From NCBI GenBank assembly GCA_024704765.1, contig JAKMXF010000297.1, positions 62,001-126,000 on the forward strand: 64,000 nt of DNA, written 5' to 3'. The stretch comes from Oopsacas minuta (taxonomy: Eukaryota > Animalia > Porifera). The notes beneath the pieces were generated by a model that was given only the letters and a program-made list of their open reading frames with translations, did no database searches and was not told the origin of the DNA. How positions within the stretch are numbered: position 1 is the stretch's first letter; the number at the start of each line of letters is the position of its first letter. Of this stretch, positions 17,778 to 32,275 are shown piece after piece. The position numbers and the translations under genes were made by a program.

Positions 17778-18629
17778 CTACTGAACTTATAGTAAATTAT
17801 TAGATTTTAATTCATTCGTTTAGATTTCTTTTCTTACTTTTAGCTTTTGCTTTTAACCCAGTATATTTTATTTATTTTATTACCATTTATAGCCAGCTGT
17901 TGGCATGGTTATATATGTTTGTATGTGTTTATCTCTATTTAGATTTTAGTTTTGATCTGTAATAAAATATATGAGATTATTAATATTATGTATGATATCC
18001 AGGGAGGGTTAATTTCAATAAATTAATTATTCAGAATGCAAATAACTGTATCGTGGTGATGTTAATAATTAAGTGACGTAGTTGAGAATGTAATATTTAT
18101 ACATATCATCTTCAAAACAAAAGTTAATCATTTATATATTCTCCTTTTCACAGAATTAGATTGATGTATTTTCATTTCATTCCTAATATTATTTGTTGAC
18201 AATACACATTACTGTCCATACATTACGTATGTTGCCAGGTGGCTGGAGCAATCAACCTATTTAGCGACGAGTATCACACGGTTGCTGGTCGGAAACATCT
18301 ATAAATATACCTGTGCTGTCTGTTAAGGATATATTTATGACTATTTCACTTACTCCATTTGCAAATCTTCGTTGCTATAGATTGCCATATTCTTAAATTG
18401 TTGCAGCACTCAGTTACAAAATCATCAGTTTTAATCCATTACGTTAACTTTCCCATGTAGGCCAGTGTTCCTTTTTCAGCTCTGCTATGTACCCCTTATC
18501 TATTTTATATGTGGACCACTCCTGAAAAACCAAAAACATAAATCTACTCTTGATAAACATATCAGATGATGTAATTGTAAATTTGGTAATTTGAGTAATA
18601 AATAATTGAATTGTTATTGTTCACATAGA

Positions 18630-19265
18630 ATGAACAACCTCTACACCAGTCCTCCTCCAATTGCTGTGAGTGAAGAGCTGTATGAAAACGCTGAAACTAT
18701 ACTCCGCAATAGTTCACAGCCGAATTATAGTTTCGTTTCAAACAGTGATACCCTGATCCATCCTGTAGCCTGTTCCCCACCTCAATCCGCTCAGAAGAGC
18801 TATGAACTGGCTGATCTCTACGATGAGCTTCAACGATACAAAAGAGACAACGAAGCTCTGAGAAAAAATTTAGATTTCACATATAATAAACATGAAGAAA
18901 TTGTTAGAAGATTGCAGACAAAGATATTTGACCTTGAGAAGGAAAGAGAAATAATACCTGTTACTAGGCCACCAGCTACACGATCTGAATCTGTTTGCTA
19001 CGATCGTATGCCTAATATGCATGCCAATCTGTCAGAACTATCCAAATATAGAGATGAAGCCATGAATCTACAGGCAGTGGTTGTCGCGTACCAAGAAGAC
19101 GTAAAGAACATCAACGAACAACTAAATGAGTGTCAGAGAGCTAAGAACGTTTTGTCCAGAGAGGCTCAGGAGAGAAATGAGAAGATTGTAGGTTTGGAGA
19201 ATGAAATTGCTTCTCTCACATTTCTTCTCAAAGATTATTCATCAGCAAGGAATGTTAATCTTTAA
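18630..19265 (+). CDS. Uncharacterised coiled-coil protein (first ATG 18630; the ORF track starts at TTG 18606)
   Basis: Open frame of ~210 codons with two heptad-rich segments. An acceptor-like cacatag sits just before the ATG, so a 5' exon is possible. Confidence 0.65.
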   Translation: MNNLYTSPPPIAVSEELYENAETILRNSSQPNYSFVSNSDTLIHPVACSPPQSAQKSYELADLYDELQRYKRDNEALRKNLDFTYNKHEEIVRRLQTKIFDLEKEREIIPVTRPPATRSESVCYDRMPNMHANLSELSKYRDEAMNLQAVVVAYQEDVKNINEQLNECQRAKNVLSREAQERNEKIVGLENEIASLTFLLKDYSSARNVNL

Positions 19266-19471
19266 TTTGATTATTTCAGTATTTGGAATTTTGTAATGCA
19301 GCTGTACATACATATACATGTTGAATTCTTTGTTTGTTTATATGCTTAAATAATATATGCGTACATATATGGATATTTTGACATATGATCACGTCATCGA
19401 TATTAGTTGTGTACTCCGGAGAATTATGAATATATATATACATTTCAAAACGAACAGGTTTATACCTAGAG

Positions 19472-21544
19472 ATGGAGAGTAAGGTAGACATCGTTCAGTT
19501 AAATGTAGGAGGTCGTAGATTCACTACCTCTAAACAGACTCTAACTTGGATACCTGAATCATTCTTTGTGAGTCTTCTAAGTGGACGTATACCGTCAATG
19601 CGTGATGAGATTGGAGCAATATTTATTGATAGAGATCCAGACATGTTTGAGATAATTCTACATTTTATGCGCACCAAAGAAGTAAATCCTAAAGGTCATA
19701 ATATTCGTAATCTCCGTACAGAAGCTGAGTATTACGGCCTACAGCCGTTAGTTATCCGGTTGAATCTATGTGACGAGTTAGAAAGGTCTCTATGTGGAGA
19801 CATCCTATTCTCTGGAATTATGCACCCACAGGACTTCACAACGGACCAAGAATCTACCTTATCGGTCCAATCTAGCTCTACAGACTCTAGTAGTATGGTG
19901 CTAACAATGACCAGCTGTGGTAATTGGGTGGGTGTAGCTTACATACATCACATCTGTTGCTACAGTCTAGAGGAAAGTATGGGGTGGCAACGAAGCTTCT
20001 ACTCTCCTCTCCTCTCCAAACCTCCTGAAAAGATTACTCTTAACACGAAGGGACACTTAATGCTAGCTGCTTCATTCGGTAATGAAATAAAATTATGGAA
20101 TTGTAAGCCTCAAGCTCAGCAAGTGGAAATAGGTACATTTGACCTGAAGAGTCCAGTTAGTGCTCTATTCTTCATTGGTCCTCAGCTAGTGGCGATTAGC
20201 AGTGTTGGGAAGGTAGGAGTATGGCATTATAGCAATCAGAACTGGACAGCTCAAGGGGTGTACGAAATAACCAGTTATACCTCCGTAGGATCTCTCCTTG
20301 TATGGGGGTCATCTAACGGAATTATAAACTCTATAGACGTACAGAAGTTCCCTCTCCGTATGAGTGACAATGATCTCTTGATAGTAGAGCTATTCAATGA
20401 CCCTCTGCATGAACCTCCTACAGCCATGAGTGTGTTTGGTAACCCAGGAGCTGGTAACGTGAGGAACAGCTGGAGTGACGTAGAGTCGATAGGTAGATGG
20501 CTAGAAGTGGCTTATGGTACCACTAGTGGTAAGATTAGGATTGTAGTACAACATCCTGAGAACTTTGGTCACGGTTTTCAGATTGTACAAACTCTGACTG
20601 TCCATACTAGTCAGATTTATACTATGTTCTTGGGAGAGAAACATCTAATATCTGTGTGTGCAGATCTTCACGTCAGGACATGGAAACTGACTCGATTCAG
20701 AGGCAGACTTGCCACCCAACCCGGACCCACCCCCCTCGCATCCTACCGTCTCCTCTCCCTTGACGCTGCTGTATGTACCCCTCTCTGCTCATTTCAGGGT
20801 CCCTTCGGAGAGCTAGACAACCAACAAGTATTTCTACAGAAAGTTGTACCTGACACTAACACTTTGTTTGTACGTCTATCTTCAACCGGAGCTCGTGTCT
20901 CTAAGATACAATCTGTAGATAATAGTAACATAACAGCTTACTACGTACACGAGTGCGAAGCTCTAGGGAGGCTAGGCTATAGACCTAGGAAGTTTGTATT
21001 CACAGGACATATAAACGGTAGTGTACAGTTATGGGACTTAACTCATACTCTCAATTCACTGAGTGAGAATACAACTGATATGACAGAAGGTGGACCCAAA
21101 CAATCTGAGTTATTAGATCTCTTAAAGCATTGCGATCTGTCTACGTCTAGATCATCTAGTCGTGTGACGTCAGTAAATCCCTCTCCTAGTCCCTCTGTAC
21201 TCAGCGTGAGGTTCCCACAGCTCCGTCCCTCTATTCCTATTACTGTCAACACGCACAGCCCTCTCCTTAGAAGAACTGCATCTCTCCATAGTATAACTAC
21301 TCTCAATTCCTATCTGAGACAGCCCTACTTGCTTACCCGTACAGACTCCTCTAGTAATTCTAGTATCTACACAGATGAACATGAGTTTACTTTGGGAGAT
21401 GGCATCAGTCAAATCGTAACCCCCTCTCCCTTAGAGCCTATATACTCACAAGACAATAACTCCCCTCTGACAGAGAACAATACTCCCACAGCTCAACCTC
21501 ACTTCAACTTATTCATTCAAGATAAACCAGATGCTGATGTATGA
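19472..21544 (+). CDS. KCTD3: BTB/POZ plus WD40-like protein, KCTD3/SHKBP1 family
   Basis: VQLNVGGRRFTTSKQTLTWIPESFFVSLLSGRI and IFIDRDP (BTB), then DVQKFPLRMSDNDLLIVELFNDP, EVAYGTTSGKIRIVVQHPE and FTGHINGSVQLWDL. Confidence 0.93.
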   Translation: MESKVDIVQLNVGGRRFTTSKQTLTWIPESFFVSLLSGRIPSMRDEIGAIFIDRDPDMFEIILHFMRTKEVNPKGHNIRNLRTEAEYYGLQPLVIRLNLCDELERSLCGDILFSGIMHPQDFTTDQESTLSVQSSSTDSSSMVLTMTSCGNWVGVAYIHHICCYSLEESMGWQRSFYSPLLSKPPEKITLNTKGHLMLAASFGNEIKLWNCKPQAQQVEIGTFDLKSPVSALFFIGPQLVAISSVGKVGVWHYSNQNWTAQGVYEITSYTSVGSLLVWGSSNGIINSIDVQKFPLRMSDNDLLIVELFNDPLHEPPTAMSVFGNPGAGNVRNSWSDVESIGRWLEVAYGTTSGKIRIVVQHPENFGHGFQIVQTLTVHTSQIYTMFLGEKHLISVCADLHVRTWKLTRFRGRLATQPGPTPLASYRLLSLDAAVCTPLCSFQGPFGELDNQQVFLQKVVPDTNTLFVRLSSTGARVSKIQSVDNSNITAYYVHECEALGRLGYRPRKFVFTGHINGSVQLWDLTHTLNSLSENTTDMTEGGPKQSELLDLLKHCDLSTSRSSSRVTSVNPSPSPSVLSVRFPQLRPSIPITVNTHSPLLRRTASLHSITTLNSYLRQPYLLTRTDSSSNSSIYTDEHEFTLGDGISQIVTPSPLEPIYSQDNNSPLTENNTPTAQPHFNLFIQDKPDADV

Positions 21545-21641
21545 CTGTTATAGTATTATTAATTATTCACATTACTGTTGTTATCATGTAAATATACCAA
21601 GTGGATAAGTTCATTTTTGATTATTTACAATTCGTTCTGTT

Positions 21642-22043
21642 ATGTCAGCTACCATGCCCAACTCTGGGATGTTAGACCACATTCGTTATAAGACACCGAC
21701 CCTGAATATGAGAGGCATCCGTTATGACGTCAACTGGCTCCCCTCTAAGCCACATACAGCGCTGGGCTATCATACACCCCGTCCTTCCGCGAAGTACTCC
21801 AGACACAGGAGCGGTATTTTCACACCTACAAACCCCCCTCCAACTGCGAGGAGCTTTTCTTCTCCTATCAATACCGTCCACCAGTCTCCAGGTCACAATC
21901 TAATCAGACAGATGAGGAATAACGAGTTATCTCCCTTCTTCACGCTCGGTAAAGTAACATGTGGGTATTACTACGATAGGTCTACAGATCATAAGAAGCG
22001 ATTCACAGGACTTATTGCTACCGACCCTGTCAAGTGGAGATGA
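21642..22043 (+). CDS. Uncharacterised 133-aa protein
   Basis: ATG-initiated ORF with coding-like GC content between two genes; C-terminal CGYYYDRSTDHKKRFTG...DPVKWR looks like a conserved motif, but I do not recognise the family. Confidence 0.6.
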   Translation: MSATMPNSGMLDHIRYKTPTLNMRGIRYDVNWLPSKPHTALGYHTPRPSAKYSRHRSGIFTPTNPPPTARSFSSPINTVHQSPGHNLIRQMRNNELSPFFTLGKVTCGYYYDRSTDHKKRFTGLIATDPVKWR

Positions 22044-22322
22044 TATTAATTCATATAATAACCTAATCTAACCCCCACCACTTTCTGTTATAGATATATT
22101 TTATTTATGCTCTATCCCATTTATCCAATACTTCATTTTACTTATACAGTCTATAGTGTATATTGTTAATTAATCTAGCTTTATATGTAAGACATAACAT
22201 CCATTGTTTAGACTCTTTAGACAATTATTCCGATTGTTCGAGCTATTTCAAATGGTTATTTATCATGTCTTCATATATTTTTCATAAAATTTTAGTTTGA
22301 GATTATTTCTACTTATTGATTG

Positions 22323-22481
22323 ATGGGAAGGAAGAAGGCTTACGTGGTAGTACGAGTGCTTAGTCTAGCGGGGACCGGATTCTTCTATAGTATGAGGAGG
22401 AAGAGGGCAGATCCCAAGATTACTATGATAAGATTTGATCCTGTAGTTAAATCAAAGGTATTATTTTCTGAGAAAAAATGA
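22323..22481 (+). CDS. MRPL33: Mitochondrial ribosomal protein bL33m, 52 aa (below the ORF-track cutoff)
   Basis: Manual translation MGRKKAYVVVRVLSLAGTGFFYSMRRKRADPKITMIRFDPVVKSKVLFSEKK* carries the L33 motifs S-x-AGTGFFY and FDPVV...VLF-x-EKK. Confidence 0.9.
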   Translation: MGRKKAYVVVRVLSLAGTGFFYSMRRKRADPKITMIRFDPVVKSKVLFSEKK

Positions 22482-22925
22482 AAACTATTATTATTTATCT
22501 TTAACTGAGCCTTACTGATTCTATGGGCATCTCAACGTATGAATATAATTTGAATTTTAGTAGGTTCATCATCAATATGCTTCAAACTCCGCAAATACTA
22601 TCCATTGTATGATACGAGTCAGCTGTCAGCATTTCATTATCATTATCTCATAATATTTTTATGCAATTATGTCTTCACCATAGACTATTTTTAATTAGTT
22701 ATTGTGTTGAACTATATCAAGCAGGTTATGCTTCTAAATTTATCGTATACTCACAATTATCTAGCAAAGACGCTTCGGAATCATTAAGATTATTCATAAT
22801 ACAGAGTCAATTACGTGAATAGGCGAAATTCGTACAATTAACTGCTATGAATGTTATGAATGATATTTATTATTATTATTATTGATAATAATAATAATAA
22901 TAAAATAATTGGAGCTGATTTTAAC

Positions 22926-22950
22926 TACAGTAGACCTCGGATAGCACGTA
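22926..22950. mobile_element. Solo pogo/Tigger-like TIR remnant
   Basis: TA|CAGTAGACCTCGGATAGC resembles pogo-type left termini; no partner TIR found. Confidence 0.3.
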
Positions 22951-23040
22951 CAAATCTTGTTACCAGAAAGAATATCTCTTACCTGAGTTCTTATGTAATA
23001 GTGGTCTCATTTAATTCATTAATAACTTAGCTCTAAATTG

Positions 23041-24084
23041 ATGGATCCAAATAAGTCTCGAAATTTCCGTTACTTCAAAGGGTTAACCACGCAGAAATCC
23101 CACTCACTTCAAAATGGCAGTAAACATGCACCAAATAAGAGACCTAACAAAACGAAAACAAGGACCAAATCTCTTAAGAAACAAATCCATGATACCCAAC
23201 GTCTCTTATTCAAGAATATTCTGTCTGAAGAAGGTGTCAAATCACAACAAGATAAGCTAGATAAACTGAAGAAGGCATATTCTGAAGAGAGACGGGATAG
23301 AAAAACTAATAAGAAATTCGCAAGGTATAAACCTATAAAGTTCTTTGATAAAAGAAAAGTATTGAAAAAACTCAATTCTCTCCACAAAATACTCCCTGAA
23401 GCTGATGATGAAGCTAGCAGTATGTTAGAAAAGGAATTTGATTTATACAAGGGCTATCTAAACTACATAATCTACTTCCCAGAGGATAAAAAGTACATTT
23501 CACTATTCCCGAATTCAGAGCGTTTAGATTCCAGTGCTCAGGAACAGCTGGATATTCTGTTACAAGAGATTAATTCTAAAGTGAAGGAAGGTTTGTATGC
23601 CAACGCCTGGACAGCATACTTAGCTAAAACGCCTATTGATCCAATCGCTCAAGATTCCGTATTACAAGAAATACAAGAACAGTTAATTAATAATCCTACG
23701 CCATTCCCTGTGTCTTCTACAGCCTCTCCAATGTTTATACCAATTGACACAGACAATCAAACAAGCATGAAAACTAAATCACCGAGTTCAACAAAAAAGC
23801 AGTTAAGTAAAAAATTACATTTTGATAAAAGTATTGACACGTCACTAGATAACCATATAAAGTTACAGTCAACAGATGACAACAATATGTCTCAAATGGA
23901 ATGTGCAGAAGATCTGAGATCTGATAGCTTCTTTTTCTTCGATACGATGGGGAGCGAGGTAGATACGAATCTCTTTAAAAACAGACCTCAGAAGAGAAAT
24001 TTCCAGGATACAAGAAATCCCAAACCTAATCCCAGAAATAGGAATTCAAAACCAAATCAGAAGCACAGAGGTCATCAGTATTAG
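23041..24084 (+). CDS. EFG1: rRNA-processing protein Efg1-like (DUF2361)
   Basis: LKKQIHDTQRLL, RYKPIKFFDKRK and LNYIIYFPEDKKYISLFP follow the Efg1 consensus; basic termini suggest a nucleolar protein. ATG at 23041. Confidence 0.75.
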   Translation: MDPNKSRNFRYFKGLTTQKSHSLQNGSKHAPNKRPNKTKTRTKSLKKQIHDTQRLLFKNILSEEGVKSQQDKLDKLKKAYSEERRDRKTNKKFARYKPIKFFDKRKVLKKLNSLHKILPEADDEASSMLEKEFDLYKGYLNYIIYFPEDKKYISLFPNSERLDSSAQEQLDILLQEINSKVKEGLYANAWTAYLAKTPIDPIAQDSVLQEIQEQLINNPTPFPVSSTASPMFIPIDTDNQTSMKTKSPSSTKKQLSKKLHFDKSIDTSLDNHIKLQSTDDNNMSQMECAEDLRSDSFFFFDTMGSEVDTNLFKNRPQKRNFQDTRNPKPNPRNRNSKPNQKHRGHQY

Positions 24085-24284
24085 GAAATTATTAGGGTAA
24101 TTAATATACAAATTGTTTATATGAACTATTAGAAGAATTTACCATATAATATACTGCAGTCAATGTATTTGTCTATATCAATGCCCCTCCCCCCCTTGAC
24201 TAACCAATGATATGGTTAATAGAATTGAAACAATTATTTACCATCACTTCTAATAATTAGACTTCATTACAAGTGTACGCTAAG

Positions 24285-25184
24285 ATGGCTATTTGTTTCT
24301 ATATCATATATCTCCTCTTACCAACTGTACTTCTTCAGACCATCTCAGTAACGCCCTCTGTGCCAGTTGTAGGCGGGATCGTGATGGTATCTTGCACTGG
24401 AAACTTGACTAGCGATCTATTTTGGAGTTTTAATATGATTGGGAATGGCTTCATTAATCTAACGACTATCCCATCCTATGAGCTTAATACCACTTCTACT
24501 AATTATACCAAAACGCTTACTTGGACTATTAGATTTCAAATTACTAATGCTGGATGGTACAAATGTGAATCTCGAATGAATGGTACAGTTGTGAGTAATA
24601 TACAGCGCTTGGCTACAGGCATTCGCTACAGGAACAGAGACAGAGATGTTGAAGTGGTGGAAGGAACCGCCATATTAAAAATACATTGTCGTTTCCAGAG
24701 TGCTCCACCAGGTTTCTTGATAGCTGAATGGTGCTTTCAACCGTATGTATTCCCAAGTGTGAATGAAACCAGCTGCATTCCTCTTCCGAACAATAGCGAT
24801 ATAATTCCTATCTCTCCAACCGAAAATCTTACTTCTACCAATACCTACACATCCACAGTCAGAATCAGTAATGTATTGATAAGTAATGCGGGTATATATC
24901 GATGTTTCCTTTCTGATGGTTTCACGAATTTAACAAAAGGAGTACGAGTGAGGGTCAGAGGTCGACTGGACCCCCTTTGGCCAGCTATCGGAATAATGAT
25001 TCAGCTTGTAATCATAGTTATTTTTATTGCTGGTCATTATTCCTGGGATTTTTACAAAGACAAACAAAAAAAGATTGAAAGACAAAAAAGGGAGGAACAG
25101 AACCTCGTGACGTCAAAAAATGAAATCATCCCTGAAGATGAACAGAAGGCAAACGAGCTGTTGATTAATGTAGCGCCAAATTGA
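24285..25184 (+). CDS. Basigin/neuroplastin-like two-Ig-domain type I membrane protein
   Basis: Signal peptide, two Ig folds (VSC...W...AGWYKC and IHC...EWC...AGIYRC), juxtamembrane RVRVRGRLDPLWPAIGI and a basic cytoplasmic tail. Confidence 0.8.
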   Translation: MAICFYIIYLLLPTVLLQTISVTPSVPVVGGIVMVSCTGNLTSDLFWSFNMIGNGFINLTTIPSYELNTTSTNYTKTLTWTIRFQITNAGWYKCESRMNGTVVSNIQRLATGIRYRNRDRDVEVVEGTAILKIHCRFQSAPPGFLIAEWCFQPYVFPSVNETSCIPLPNNSDIIPISPTENLTSTNTYTSTVRISNVLISNAGIYRCFLSDGFTNLTKGVRVRVRGRLDPLWPAIGIMIQLVIIVIFIAGHYSWDFYKDKQKKIERQKREEQNLVTSKNEIIPEDEQKANELLINVAPN

Positions 25185-25385
25185 GCCAGCTGTTTGTTAT
25201 TACGTCACAAGTATCTATGTATTAGATTATACTCTAGTTACTTATACTACGCTAGTTCTATGATTTTGTATATATTCTCTGCGTAGCATGTATACCCTTG
25301 TTTCGCCTCTATTTTACTTTCAATCTAGTATTACTCTATTCATTCTTATTATTAATATCCATTAGTTTATATTTAGTTTTTCAGA

Positions 25386-28300
25386 ATGACAAATACAGAA
25401 ATACTTGATCTTCAGCCAGATTGGAATTTAGCTCTCAGTGAGAAACAGCCTACTATATGGGTGTCTTACCGACGGAACAAGTCAGACACCATCCAAGAGG
25501 ACTTGTTAAAACTGTCTTACTCAGCTGAACACAGTAGCATACCGGGTAGTAGTAATTTTGAAATCGGTTATAGCCACATCATGAAAAGTAAAATTTCAGT
25601 TATTCACACCTCTTCGAAAGCTCATTGTGACTTCTTTTCACCTCAACAGACCTGGCCTGTGCATAAATACTGGGTTAATAGTCTGAACATTTCTCCCTCT
25701 GGAAACTTAGGAGTATCTTGTTCTGAAGACGGACAGTTATCTATATGGGAGACAAGTACTGGTGTAGTTCGTCGTAAACTCTCTGGTCATTTTGGTGACG
25801 TATACACTTGTAGATTCTACCCCTCAGGCGAGGTGGTGCTATCAGGAGGATCAGATTTCCGACTAAGAATTTGGTCTGTAGCTGATGGTAGTTGTCCTCG
25901 TGTCTTGTCAGGACATAAGCGGCGTATCACAAGTACTCAGATCATAGAGAGGGGGAGAAATGTTATTTCAGCATCTCTGGACGGAACTGCTAGAATTTGG
26001 GACTGTGGGAGTGGATCCTGTATTGCCCTGCTCTCTCAGGTAGTACCATATATATTGTATTATATATCTTCGTACATTTTCTTTGTAAATATTATTATAA
26101 TTATATTTAGTAAAGTCAGGCTTAAGATAAGTGTTTCAAATTGTATCGTTTGCATTGGCTAAATGCTTACTAGATTCTCTCATTCTGCAAATGGCTGCTC
26201 CTCGTAGATTCCCAGAGAACACTCCTAAAGCTAACTTAGGCTATCAACACACTCAGAAACATAAAGGAAGTTATCCTAAAGCAGCTATGCTTTACGGAGG
26301 GCAGCCAAATAATTCTCCTCCTCGACGTGTTAAGCAACAACCTCAACAACTACCTGTATTATCTACTCAATCTGTGGTACCTACTCAGAGTCCTGTTATA
26401 CAACCTCAAGTAGCTCAACAGACTATAATACAACCTGAACAACCTATTCTACACGCTCAACAACCTCTGCAACCTGAACAACCTATTCTACAACCTGAAC
26501 AACCTATTCTACAACCTCAACAGCCTGCTACACAACCTCAACCACCCATTGACCATATTATGGCTTCTTCTTCCTTATCCAGACAACCTCTTCTCCCTCA
26601 TAACTCTTCTCTTGCGAATGATACAGAATCTCTGAGCTTACAACAACATTCTGCCCACATAGTAGAGAAACCTAGAAATATACTCCTTCCTCAGAATGAC
26701 GTAATTCCTGAATTTCCCACTATTCAGCCTGACAAACCAACAGCTCAGGCTAACTCCTCATCGTTTCGTTCCTCTCAACCCGGACAGAGTGCCAAGGTTG
26801 CTGAAGACATCTCTCTAATAGATTGGGCAGAGTACTCATTCCTTGCTTGCTTTCAAGTTGAGAAGAAGATTGGGAAGGGACAATTCAGCGAAGTATTTCG
26901 TGGTAAATGCATTCCTCTGAATGCTGTGGTTGCTGTGAAGAAAGTACAAATATTCGAGATGGTAGACGCTAAGGCACGTAATGATTGTATCAAAGAGATT
27001 GACTTATTGAAACAACTTAACCACGCTAACGTCATCAGATATCTTGCTTCATTCATTGAGAATAACGAGCTGAATATAGTGCTGGAGTTAGCAGATGCAG
27101 GGGATCTATCTCGTATGATAAAACATTTCAAGAGACAAAGGAAATTGATACCAGAGAGAACTATATGGAAATATTTCCAACAAGTATGTGCAGGTCTAGA
27201 TCATATGCACAGTAAGAGGATAATGCATCGTGACATCAAACCTGCTAACGTATTCATTACTGTTACTGGGGTAGTTAAGCTAGGTGATCTGGGATTAGGG
27301 CGTTACTTTTCCTCTCAGACTATAGTCTCTCACTCATTGGTAGGTACTCCTTACTACATGAGTCCTGAGAGGATAAATGAGGTAGGATACAGTTTCAGGT
27401 CTGACATATGGTCTCTGGGGTGTTTACTCTATGAAATGTCTGTGTTTCAGAGTCCATTCTATGGTGACAAGATGACATTAATGCTATTGTGTAGAAGGAT
27501 TGAGAAATGTGACTACCCACCTCTACCCACGGACTTATTCACGCCAGAACTGAGACAACTCGTTAATCTCTGTATACAGGCTAAGCCGGATGACAGACCT
27601 GATTCAGGACAAGTTCTAGAAGTAGCTATCTTCATGAAAAGGCGTACGAACCAAACCCCCCAACCCCCTCCTGTCCCTCAGACATAGCCTATCTCCATAT
27701 GAGATATACGGTTAACTGATCGCTTAAGAACTTCTTTATTTTCTGACTTCATCTGAATTACTTATTCTTATATTTTATCTTAATATCATTGGAAACTAAT
27801 TTGTTACAAGCTTTGGGACTTTTATTTGTATTTTATAAGTAAATAAACTAATAAAGCAATCCCTTTCCTCCTTTAGCTACAGTCACCAATCAATGACATA
27901 TCTCTAATCACCTCCCCAGTAGCTTCTAACTCAACTCCTGGTGATCCACTAGAGATTGGAACAGCTGGTAAGGTATTAACAGCTGTTTGTGAGAATGGAG
28001 ATGTTAGAGGGATTTCTCTTGTTGACAAGGAACAAGTGTTTAATATGAAACTCTTATCACCTGTCAATTGTTGTTACTTCCTGTCAGATACACTTGTCGC
28101 CTGTGGTTGTGATGACGGGTTGTTATCTTTATTCGATATAAGATATTCTCTACCACTACACTCCATTCATCATTCAAATTCGCGAATTCTCTCGCTCACA
28201 GCCTACAACACTAATCTAGTTGTTTGTAGAGGAGATGGAACAACAGAAATATTCAACTCCTTAGAATCACAATCTCCTAGCCTCCTCCAGAAGCTAACTG

Positions 28301-28395
28301 GACCTCTATGTGATCCTCTCTCCTCCGTAGCTTCTTATCAGAACCTCATTTACACAGGCTGTAGAGATGGTCAAGTCAGGAAGTATAAGATGTAG
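25386..28395 (+). CDS. PAAF1: Proteasomal ATPase-associated factor 1 (WD40); exons 25386..26039 and 27877..28395
   Basis: Exon 1 has [31 protein letters not shown] and [19 protein letters not shown]. Exon 2 has EIGTAGK...VNCCYFL...LTGPLCDP...[12 protein letters not shown]. Phase-0 intron CAG|GTAGTA at 26040 to cctttag at 27876. Confidence 0.93.
26191..27687 (+). CDS. NEK7: NEK6/NEK7-type NIMA-related Ser/Thr kinase with a Q/P-rich N-terminal extension, nested in the PAAF1 intron
   Basis: [80 protein letters not shown]. First ATG at 26191. Confidence 0.95.
26401..26545 (+). repeat. Coding tandem repeat (QPEQPIL-type units)
   Basis: caacctgaacaacctattcta occurs three times, with further caacct(c/g) units. 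Confidence 0.8.
27842..27876 (+). promoter_or_regulatory. Two AATAAA hexamers overlapping a CTAAT branch-site motif, then the PAAF1 3' splice site
   Basis: AATAAA at 27842..27847 and 27850..27855, CTAAT at 27848..27852, pyrimidine tract ccctttcctccttt and AG at 27875..27876. Confidence 0.55.
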
Positions 28396-28607
28396 CTACG
28401 TATATCGAAAGTATACGTAATTACTTTTGATATGTATGATTAGTTTAAAGTTCGTAGTATAATTATTATTTGCGTGACCGATGATGTTTATTGATTTGCA
28501 TTGCACTTTATATGATGGAGTGCTACGTAAAATTGAGTAACATGAATATCTAATTACTTACATAGACATTGAATTTATTAACGTAGATACTCTGGAATCT
28601 ATATTGA

Positions 28608-30419
28608 ATGTGTGGCATATTAGTTCTGTTATTCTATTCTCAAGCTTTACCCTATGAATGGGTAGATAAGCTGTATCACTTCATAAATAGACGAGGACCT
28701 GATGGAGCAGGTGAGAAGACGATACCTGTGAAAGGAGGAGAATTCTCTCTGAGACTTATAGCTACACTCCTGCGTATGAGAGGGCTTGTTGCTATTCTAC
28801 AACCTAAATCTGACAAATCTGGTAATTCACTTTTATTCAACGGAGAGATATTCTCTGGTTACGACATAGCAGATGGAGATAATGATACCGTCGTGTTATT
28901 CTCTGCTCTTGTATCCTGTTCAGGAGCTGAGCCTCTGCTTAAATGCATAGCAGACATTAGGGGGCCATGGGCACTAGTATTCTGGCGCCAGAATGCTAGA
29001 GAACTGTGGTTTGGTAGAGATATATTTGGTAGGAGAAGTTTGTTGATTGGTCACAACCCATCATGTGGCGTACCTATCATAATATCTTCTGTTGGTTACC
29101 ATACTGATGGATTGGAATGCATTGAATTACCAGCTGTAGGCTTGTTCTGTATGGATCTCAGTGTAGAGGGAACTCCTTTAGCTCTCAAATGTTATCCCTG
29201 GCTTACAGTAGATGGTACCAGCATGTCATATGTAGATGACGTCATGGAAGCTGTTGCTAGTATTGAAAAACTCCTCTCTCTTAAAGTTGATATAATATGT
29301 TCATCTTCTTTTATCAGTATGATCCCTCCTCTGAACAGAGTACTATCTCCTATACATCCTCATGACTTAATACCACCTGTTGATATTAATTCTGCTACTA
29401 GCAATGCTACTCAGCTGTTAGCAGTTCTACAAGAAGCTGTTAGACTGAGAGTTTGTAACAGACCATGGTCTATTTCTACAGTTAATCATGCTCCTGTTCC
29501 TACACAAGTTGTAATACAAGAGTCACTTGGAGACACTGCACTATCTGAATTAGTTAAATCCAAACCGCAAATATCTCCACAACAGGGGACAGCTAAAGTA
29601 GGAATCCTATTCTCTGGGGGTCTAGATTCTGCGGTCATTGCCGCTCTAGTTGATAGAGAACTTCCTATTGAGGAAGAAATAGATTTACTAAATGTATCAT
29701 TTATTAAATCTAACACAAGCACAGCTGTTGCTCCAGACAGACAGACTGGACTATCTTGTCTTGCTCAACTGAATCCAAATAGACATTGGAACTTTGTTCA
29801 GATAGACACTTGTTTAACAGAGTTAAGTCAAATTCGAAAGGACAATACTGAACAGCTGATCTATCCGTTAACAACTGTAATGGATGATAGCATAGGAACT
29901 CCTGTATGGTTAGCAGCGATGGGACTGGGTCATCTATATCAGCAACAAGCGGCTACTTATATTCCCTATCAATCAAATGCTAGAATACTATTAGTGGGGA
30001 TGGGTGCTGATGAACAGCTGGGGGGATACACGAGACACAGGAATTTGTTCGAGAAGGGAGGATGGGAGAGACTATTGACTGAGATAGAATTTGATCTGAG
30101 AAGGATATCAGTTCGGAATCTTGGAAGAGATGACAGATGTATAAGTGATCACGGGAAGGAGGCTAGGTTTCCATTTCTAGATGAGGAGGTTGTGAGTTTT
30201 CTACAAAAACTACCTCTTAATGATAAAATGGATTTGTCTCTTACTAGAGGACAAGGTGACAAGAAAGTGCTTAGAGAAGTTGCTAATATTCTAGGGTTAG
30301 AATTTTCTGCTAAGTTGCCTAAGAAAGCAATCCAGTTTGGTTCCAACTTTGCTAAAGTCACAGGTAGTACTAAATTCAAAGCAGGTGAACAAATATTTTT
30401 CCAGAAAAATCAATTCTAA
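28608..30419 (+). CDS. ASNSD1: Asparagine synthetase domain-containing protein 1
   Basis: N-terminal MCGI (Ntn fold), RRGPDG, LLFNGEIF, FGRDIFGRRSLL, ILFSGGLDS, LVGMGADEQLGGY, RNLGRDDR, PKKAIQFGS. Confidence 0.95.
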   Translation: MCGILVLLFYSQALPYEWVDKLYHFINRRGPDGAGEKTIPVKGGEFSLRLIATLLRMRGLVAILQPKSDKSGNSLLFNGEIFSGYDIADGDNDTVVLFSALVSCSGAEPLLKCIADIRGPWALVFWRQNARELWFGRDIFGRRSLLIGHNPSCGVPIIISSVGYHTDGLECIELPAVGLFCMDLSVEGTPLALKCYPWLTVDGTSMSYVDDVMEAVASIEKLLSLKVDIICSSSFISMIPPLNRVLSPIHPHDLIPPVDINSATSNATQLLAVLQEAVRLRVCNRPWSISTVNHAPVPTQVVIQESLGDTALSELVKSKPQISPQQGTAKVGILFSGGLDSAVIAALVDRELPIEEEIDLLNVSFIKSNTSTAVAPDRQTGLSCLAQLNPNRHWNFVQIDTCLTELSQIRKDNTEQLIYPLTTVMDDSIGTPVWLAAMGLGHLYQQQAATYIPYQSNARILLVGMGADEQLGGYTRHRNLFEKGGWERLLTEIEFDLRRISVRNLGRDDRCISDHGKEARFPFLDEEVVSFLQKLPLNDKMDLSLTRGQGDKKVLREVANILGLEFSAKLPKKAIQFGSNFAKVTGSTKFKAGEQIFFQKNQF

Positions 30420-30724
30420 TATGAATAATTAATTTTTGAAACCTTAAAGGTATATCTTATACCGTTCTGTAATTCCTTGTGTTTATTCGTGGTATATTAC
30501 TTCCATATAGAGTATTTATTATTGAAAGTTGTTTATTACTCATTTTTTATTCTAATAATTAATTCTACTCAATCATGTACTTTCCTAGGAATAACATATT
30601 CTAAATTTAACTTTAGACTAACTTTTCCTACGTAAGTAATGTGACAGTATTTAACTATAAAGTGAATCTATAGAATATAATTCCTCTAAATTGTATCCAA
30701 AATATATTAGTTTTGACTAGCACA

Positions 30725-32275
30725 ATGGCAACAGGCTCTGAAATTGTACAAGATGGTTTTTGTGGAAACAGACCGACACCCCAAACACAGGGTGCCAGGG
30801 ATTGCGCTATTTGTTTCTGCCCAATGACGTCAGAGGATATAAATGTACCTCGGTTATTAACTTGTGGACATACATTCTGCACTGAATGTATAAGGAAGAT
30901 ATACCTAGCATCAACTGATGCATACAACTATAGAAGAAGGATGGAAAGAGAAATCCTATGTCCACATTGTAAAACTCCATGTCTCATACCGGACGGAGAT
31001 GCTTCGAAATTGCCAAAAAATTATATTTTGTTGGATATAATTTCTGAACAGCCGCGAATAAAGGTCGATGTCGAACGAATAACTTGTAATATACATAATA
31101 TCGTGAAGAAATCATATTGCTTCAATTGCCAGGAACTTGTATGTCCTTATTGCCAAATGAGTCATCATCAAGGCCATAACTGCGAAATTACTATAGAAGC
31201 AATCAAGGTATTCCTAACTGATTTTAAACAACATGAAGAGAGATTGGAAGCTTATGCTCAGCAACTTAAATCTGCTAAAGATAAGTTCCAAGCAACTCTC
31301 TACAGACTGAAAGAGAATAAAAGGGAGGCTTCTCATCACATCAACTTGAGATTCACAGCTATAATCGAAGAGGCATCTAAATGGAAAAATATAAATATTC
31401 GTAAACTAGAAGACATCACAAAGGAGAGAGAAGATATTTTAGAACAACAAATAGAGAGTCTAGATAGCGTTATAGATGAAACTGAGCAGAAACTTGATTT
31501 AGCTCGTCGTGTAACCTCCCCCCAGAACGAGGAGGAATTCTTCATACATCATACTCAAATAGTTAATGATAGTAAAGTGCTAATAAGCAAGGAGTTAGGT
31601 TTACAACCATTAGTTCACGAGCATATTGAGTGGCGAGTAGATCCAATTAATCATATTATCGATTATCTTAACAGAATTGCCTTTGTGAATGAAGATGCTA
31701 ATGCTGCTCCGTCTGCTGTCAAGTCTCCTCCCCAGTCTATTGAACCTATCACTGATGCTGTTGCATCACAGAAGCCAATTGTAAATATTCCAGCTTCAAT
31801 TCCAACTCTAACTCTATCTCCATATCAAAGTCCAATTTCAACTCCTCATAGTTATCCAAGTTCCCAGGTTCAGGCCTATCCTATTCAACAAATGCATCCA
31901 TTATCTCAGACCGCTAGAAGCTCAAGTGCTGAGAATATGCTTATGGGGAGGAGTTCAGGTCAACCTAAAATGCACGTCACCAATCCACATCTTACTACTC
32001 ACAATTCTTCCTTTATGCCAGTTGCAGACTCTTCACTATCACCTCGACCTCGACCTTACCCTCAAGTCCAATCAGCTAGAGATGTTGATTCATACAGGAA
32101 TAGCTATTACGCTGTGCGTGAGTCTGAGGAAAATATTAAGCCTACTCCACACCCCACTGGGATGCCTCCTGGAGACTTGAGTGAGGGAACTAGAAGTACT
32201 AACATGTACGATAGATCCGTACCAAGTGGACACATATATGAGAATCCTTTCTGCCCGGAAGAACCTACTATTTAA
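30725..32275 (+). CDS. TRIM-like RING, B-box, coiled-coil protein with a disordered C-terminus
   Basis: RING CAIC...CGHTFCTEC...CPHC, linker LPKNYIL, B-box CNIH...CFNCQELVCPYC...HQGH and a long coiled coil. First ATG at 30725. Confidence 0.88.
   Translation: MATGSEIVQDGFCGNRPTPQTQGARDCAICFCPMTSEDINVPRLLTCGHTFCTECIRKIYLASTDAYNYRRRMEREILCPHCKTPCLIPDGDASKLPKNYILLDIISEQPRIKVDVERITCNIHNIVKKSYCFNCQELVCPYCQMSHHQGHNCEITIEAIKVFLTDFKQHEERLEAYAQQLKSAKDKFQATLYRLKENKREASHHINLRFTAIIEEASKWKNINIRKLEDITKEREDILEQQIESLDSVIDETEQKLDLARRVTSPQNEEEFFIHHTQIVNDSKVLISKELGLQPLVHEHIEWRVDPINHIIDYLNRIAFVNEDANAAPSAVKSPPQSIEPITDAVASQKPIVNIPASIPTLTLSPYQSPISTPHSYPSSQVQAYPIQQMHPLSQTARSSSAENMLMGRSSGQPKMHVTNPHLTTHNSSFMPVADSSLSPRPRPYPQVQSARDVDSYRNSYYAVRESEENIKPTPHPTGMPPGDLSEGTRSTNMYDRSVPSGHIYENPFCPEEPTI

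Follow-up and report, generated by a model that had tools for sequence, protein, structure and literature searches.

In the genome of the glass sponge Oopsacas minuta, the only intron of the gene for the proteasome chaperone PAAF1 (Rpn14) wholly encloses, on the same strand, a complete and intronless orthologue of the kinase NEK7, an arrangement that, judged from the locus and its counterparts in related assemblies, is well supported as a true same-strand nested gene pair. Both genes are contained in the window, the stretch of 64,000 nucleotides that was analysed and to whose first letter all coordinates refer. For the locus as a whole, we consider it probable that an old nested pair is expressed by read-through splicing of the host and by a separate leader-bearing mRNA of the guest, the latter probably transcribed from a promoter of its own.

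The PAAF1 host and its NEK7 guest

The first exon of PAAF1 (25386-26039, + strand) is an open reading frame of 218 codons that starts with the ATG at 25386 and encodes the first WD40 blades and, ahead of them, the N-terminal domain. It ends in the sequence CTCTCAG, followed by the donor GTAGTA with the boundary between 26039 and 26040. The intron that begins there (26040-27876, +; GTAGTA...TTTAG) is the sole intron of the gene, is in phase 0 and encompasses 1837 nt, in a gene-dense and intron-poor genome with published means of 341 bp per intron and 1.59 introns per gene (PMC10280926). The second exon (27877-28395, +) completes the set of WD40 blades and supplies the C-terminus in 172 codons and a stop. 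At its start, the host acceptor CCTCCTTTAG is followed by CTA with the boundary between 27876 and 27877, and the frame of the exon is closed upstream by the TAG of this acceptor itself. A further CAG acceptor (TTTTTCAG) is located one nucleotide upstream of the PAAF1 ATG.

The identity of the host was assessed exon by exon, with the single exons rather than the joined protein used in the searches. Exon 1 displays a WD40 match in Pfam with an E-value of 4.5e-25, and both halves retrieve generic WD40 matches only, a picture that did not change in sequence searches of the PDB, where neither half matched anything beyond generic WD40 proteins. The assignment to PAAF1 is manifested in the alignment to homologues from other animals. 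Residues 3-216 of exon 1 align with residues 6-212 of a protein carrying the UniRef name 'Proteasomal ATPase-associated factor' (P0007) at 40% identity, and residues 93-171 of exon 2 with residues 244-318 of the same protein. In a longer homologue (P0010), residues 71-222 are matched by residues 63-213 of exon 1, directly followed by residues 233-429, which are matched by residues 5-172 of exon 2. Since both halves are thus collinear on PAAF1 proteins of other animals, they abut without residues missing at the junction. The encoded protein shows a non-WD N-terminal region preceding the WD40 propeller and its best similarity is to a named PAAF1, with each half being present in a single copy in a genome search of the O. 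minuta assembly.

The guest (26191-27687, +) is an uninterrupted coding sequence of 1497 nt for a protein of 498 amino acids, in which a Q/P-rich extension at the N-terminus (about 215 residues) precedes the kinase domain. Its ATG is found 151 nt downstream of the host donor and its stop codon 189 nt upstream of the host acceptor. On its upstream side, the kinase frame is closed by an in-frame TAA (26128-26130). Residues 214-483 align with residues 27-296 in structures of human NEK7 with an E-value of 1.6e-136, compared to 1.8e-48 for NEK1 as next family by score, and the Pfam Pkinase domain is recognized with an E-value of 2.3e-61. The kinase domain shares 70-76% identity with proteins from many animals that are named NEK7 or NEK6, and its HRD, DLG and GTPYYMSPE motifs are intact. 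As the second-best kinase in the O. minuta genome is only 38% identical to the guest, latter is the sole NEK6/7 gene of the organism. The orthologues in related assemblies, with lengths of 492-568 residues, all begin with the sequence MAAP, which fixes the position of the start codon. We thus find a complete gene, with a full reading frame, conserved start and stop, intact catalytic motifs and no second NEK6/7 member in the genome. The earlier note on this DNA had described a NEK6/7 kinase of this kind within the PAAF1 intron, and its coordinates, the length and phase of the intron, the length of the coding sequence and both spacers all agree with the sequence.

The N-terminal extension (26191-26840) contains three QPEQPIL repeats. 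Extensions of 200-280 residues are found in all related assemblies, whereas in other animals the entire NEK7 comprises about 300 residues. Elsewhere in the O. minuta genome, kinase reading frames form clusters on contig 111 (at about 1.26-1.28 Mb) and contig 266 (at about 289-306 kb), suggesting tandem kinase expansions.

Conservation of the layout in related assemblies

For a comparison of orthologous loci, we used six proteins of 243-298 residues called from open reading frames of ENA assemblies, which are 61-75% identical to exon 1, and compared five of the loci. Each of the six proteins extends briefly past the donor and the extension is not conserved. The order of exon 1, NEK7 and exon 2 on one strand is the same in four relatives (L009, L013, L015 and L016), in which NEK7 is likewise contained wholly within the PAAF1 intron. 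In the same four assemblies, a donor of the form CAG/GTAnT and an acceptor of the form YCTYTAG/C (with the slash marking the splice site) interrupt the same codon in the same phase. The introns themselves differ in length, with 1840 nt in L009, 6721 nt in L013, 2200 nt in L015 and 3015 nt in L016. Across the assemblies, the distance from the donor to the ATG of NEK7 ranges from 137 to 4704 nt and the distance from the end of NEK7 to the host acceptor is always between 161 and 430 nt. L014, the most distant of the assemblies, retains the donor and NEK7, and no exon 2 was detected in the 10 kb that follow the kinase gene. In relatives, the intron has gained further content. The more than 10 kb downstream of NEK7 in L014 (L014:11561-21560) include a DDE_Tnp_4 fragment. 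A 450-residue antisense orphan reading frame is located in the intron of L013 (L013:5744-7096, - strand), and the extra reading frames in the introns of the relatives have neither a match in Pfam nor a clear relative in O. minuta.

The five related loci share a neighbourhood in which genes for a BTB/WD protein, Efg1 and an Ig-like protein precede PAAF1/NEK7, with ASNSD1 and a RING/B-box protein following, and this common order fits the microsynteny described among glass sponges (PMC10282587). The related assemblies themselves probably originate from glass sponges. In the window, a row of eight successive long reading frames on the + strand (18606-32275) accounts for seven genes, in the order Lebercilin-like, a 690-residue reading frame, Efg1, Ig-like, PAAF1 with NEK7, ASNSD1 and RING/B-box-like. 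The 690-residue frame is BTB/WD-like by its marking in the relatives, and the spacers from Efg1 to the RING/B-box frame measure about 200-300 nt.

We considered whether the two WD40 halves could be separate genes, or remnants of a decaying split gene, with NEK7 merely situated between them. Such an interpretation would account for the lack of a nearby exon 2 in L014 and for our search of the protein collection, where no O. minuta product extends across the PAAF1 junction and none contains the N-terminus of NEK7. It would have to be reconciled with pairwise dN/dS ratios of 0.08-0.23 for exon 1 and 0.12-0.26 for exon 2 (at dS values mostly above 0.7), according to which both halves are, as read from these sequences, under purifying selection, and with the conservation of GT, AG and phase at the boundaries. 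Exon 2 starts right after the TAG of the acceptor and lacks a conserved methionine, with the sequence of L013 containing no methionine at all, so that it cannot serve by itself as a template for translation. In addition, both exons abut without gap on the PAAF1 of other animals, and half a propeller would be unlikely to fold by itself. We thus regard separate or decaying halves as highly improbable. The nested reading, which had been put forward in the earlier note, is instead underlined by the collinear halves, the flanking donor, acceptor and phase in four assemblies, the dN/dS ratios of both halves and the lack of a conserved methionine in exon 2. The two exons are in this case predicted to be joined in the mature mRNA across NEK7. 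Layout, splice sites and phase persist in no fewer than four other genomes, and the pair is probably old within glass sponges.

Signals flanking NEK7 and the annotated fusion model

Upstream of NEK7, the only conserved stretch is an acceptor-like motif (GCTTACTAG, 26150-26173, +), which ends 17 nt before the ATG. A YAG (in O. minuta the TAG at 26171-26173) is located 8-19 nt upstream of the start codon in six of six assemblies, with individual distances of 17, 8, 19, 12, 13 and 19 nt. In the window, a pyrimidine-rich YAG is found within 25 nt of 12 of the 22 starts of long reading frames, compared to 27.6% of all ATGs (P = 0.007), and the signature at start codons is only moderately enriched. 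Trans-splicing of a spliced leader has been listed for hexactinellids (PMC7986045), and a leader of about 37 nt was described in Aphrocallistes vastus (PMC10282587). In combination with this published leader, the conserved acceptor at 26173, a position already named in the earlier note, favours a spliced leader on NEK7, and we infer that it may be joined at this position. In A. vastus, the leader was detected on only about 4% of long reads (PMC10282587), and conservation of the acceptor is for that reason no proof of its use.

The same AG is employed in the deposited annotation. The best protein match to the locus, with 100% identity, is LOD99_4145 from O. minuta, a model of 557 residues that joins 25386-25887 to 26174-27342 by splicing from a GT within exon 1 (at 25888) to this AG at 26173. 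If correct, the locus would encode a PAAF1-NEK7 fusion protein, and the proposed join does stay in frame. This result affects the claim of the earlier note that the local acceptors would not permit an in-frame fusion. It holds for the true donor following 26039, where a join to 26173 places 17 nt ahead of the ATG, and does not extend to the GT at 25888, from where the join to 26173 is in frame on paper. This GT is confined to O. minuta, with five of five relatives reading GGC or GGG AGC at the equivalent position, and the variation in the distance between acceptor and ATG described above implies that no fusion frame is kept. The model further omits part of the propeller and the whole of exon 2, and it terminates NEK7 within the activation segment at the sequence SHSLV, where the reading frame continues for another 115 conserved codons. 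Moreover, it originates from an annotation with almost no nested genes, listing 83 compared to 2432 in A. vastus (PMC10282587). A genuine fusion protein consequently appears extremely unlikely, and we take LOD99_4145 as a chimera of PAAF1 and NEK7 that arose as artefact of a pipeline disallowing nested genes.

Downstream of NEK7, two AATAAA hexamers starting at 27842 and 27850 (27842-27855, +) precede the end of the host acceptor by 29 and 21 nt. They are likely poly(A) signals and, given that an AATAAA or ATTAAA also precedes the host acceptor by 43-70 nt in L009, L013 and L015, we infer that the pair may be used in this capacity by NEK7. The second hexamer (27850-27855) overlaps with a branch-point-like CTAAT (27848-27852), and the signals for 3' splicing of the host and for putative cleavage of the guest share about 35 nt (27842-27876). 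Closer to the stop codon, the 3' UTR of NEK7 contains a block of about 45 nt (27708-27752, +; ACGGTTAACTGATCGC...CTTTATTTTCTGAC) that is retained in five assemblies despite saturated dS. The block is specific to the locus, as it is unique in a genome-wide search of O. minuta. A consensus fold of the block gave no pairs, and a search of Rfam across 25000-29000 gave no match.

Expression of the pair and its relation to known systems

Taken together, the described signals suggest how both genes could be expressed from the same strand. RNA polymerase would read through NEK7, and splicing from the donor of exon 1 (26040) to the acceptor at 27876, which is strong and rich in pyrimidines, would yield the mRNA of PAAF1. 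The mRNA of NEK7 would be a separate molecule, whose 5' end would be made by trans-splicing at the TAG at 26171-26173, with the leader joined at 26174, and whose 3' end would be set by the AATAAA pair at 27842 and 27850 just before the host acceptor. Its precursor would most likely originate from a promoter within the 134 AT-rich nucleotides that separate the host donor from the acceptor at 26173, although part of the NEK7 mRNA may still derive from host transcripts. A promoter of its own is favoured because, on a host transcript, the upstream donor would tend to take the acceptor in cis. In nematodes, an acceptor is preferentially used in cis when a donor lies upstream on the same RNA. With respect to transcripts, the protein-collection searches retrieved no RNA-derived product of O. 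minuta with either exon 1 (matches of 142-451 residues), NEK7 (274-871 residues) or the N-terminus of NEK7 (83-262 residues). Exact look-ups of NEK7, of the neighbouring intronless genes for a dynein light chain and a CHORD protein, and of LOD99_4145 were equally blank.

In an alternative scenario, NEK7 would have no promoter of its own and the mRNAs of PAAF1 and NEK7 would be mutually exclusive products of a single precursor that is transcribed from the PAAF1 promoter, as in an operon with one gene nested in the other. Cis-splicing would remove NEK7 in the lariat, whereas trans-splicing at 26173 and poly(A) cleavage within the intron would release the NEK7 mRNA and thereby destroy the host transcript. 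The acceptor, the NEK7 reading frame and the poly(A) signals are necessarily contained in every host transcript, the acceptor is the only conserved block upstream of NEK7 while the distance from the donor to the ATG spans 137-4704 nt, and NEK7 stays close to the host acceptor in all species. The geometry of the locus would hence be compatible with a spliced-leader operon, and the resemblance to the operons of nematodes and tunicates comprises the head-to-tail arrangement of genes with short spacers on one strand, an acceptor immediately upstream of the start codon and a candidate poly(A) signal shortly before the next acceptor. Unlike in these operons, the acceptor following the poly(A) signal of NEK7 belongs to host exon 2 and must accept exon 1 instead of the leader, and there is no 3'-end site upstream of NEK7 that would free its acceptor. 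The upstream donor should favour use of the NEK7 acceptor in cis, which would lead to a truncated and out-of-frame PAAF1. Operons have also not been reported for hexactinellids (PMC7986045). We thus deem this mode of expression unlikely, yet clearly less so than a fusion protein or separate halves. If it were true, production of a proteasome chaperone and of a mitotic kinase would be traded off by a choice between splicing and cleavage that was kept throughout glass-sponge evolution, and no operon-like unit would have been shown in sponges before this locus.

Either way, PAAF1 and NEK7 are one more, well-conserved case of a phenomenon that previous publications have described in glass sponges and ctenophores. 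In A. vastus, 2432 nested genes account for about 12% of all genes, and many of them are conserved between glass sponges (PMC10282587). The ctenophore Hormiphora californensis, which also uses a leader, contains many nested genes that are parallel to their host, and human and fly likewise have nested genes in parallel orientation (PMC8527503). The notion that nesting on the same strand would be uncommon, as stated in the earlier note, does thus not apply to this lineage. As in the cases from glass sponges and the ctenophore, a complete and mostly single-exon guest resides in one intron of a compact, leader-using genome. O. minuta differs in its annotation, where few nested genes are listed and the described pair is modelled as a chimera. 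In the portions of the two papers available to us (PMC10282587; PMC8527503), the pair of PAAF1 as host and NEK7 as guest is not described, and the A. vastus paper (PMC10282587) gives no count of nested genes residing on the strand of their host.

The finding entails the correction of a gene model, since LOD99_4145 hides two conserved housekeeping genes, PAAF1 and NEK6/7, of which this sponge has just one each. With an intron of 1.8 kb, a single guest and conserved splice signals and putative poly(A) signals within 35 nt, the locus offers a compact test case for how a leader-using genome keeps a host and a guest on the same strand apart.
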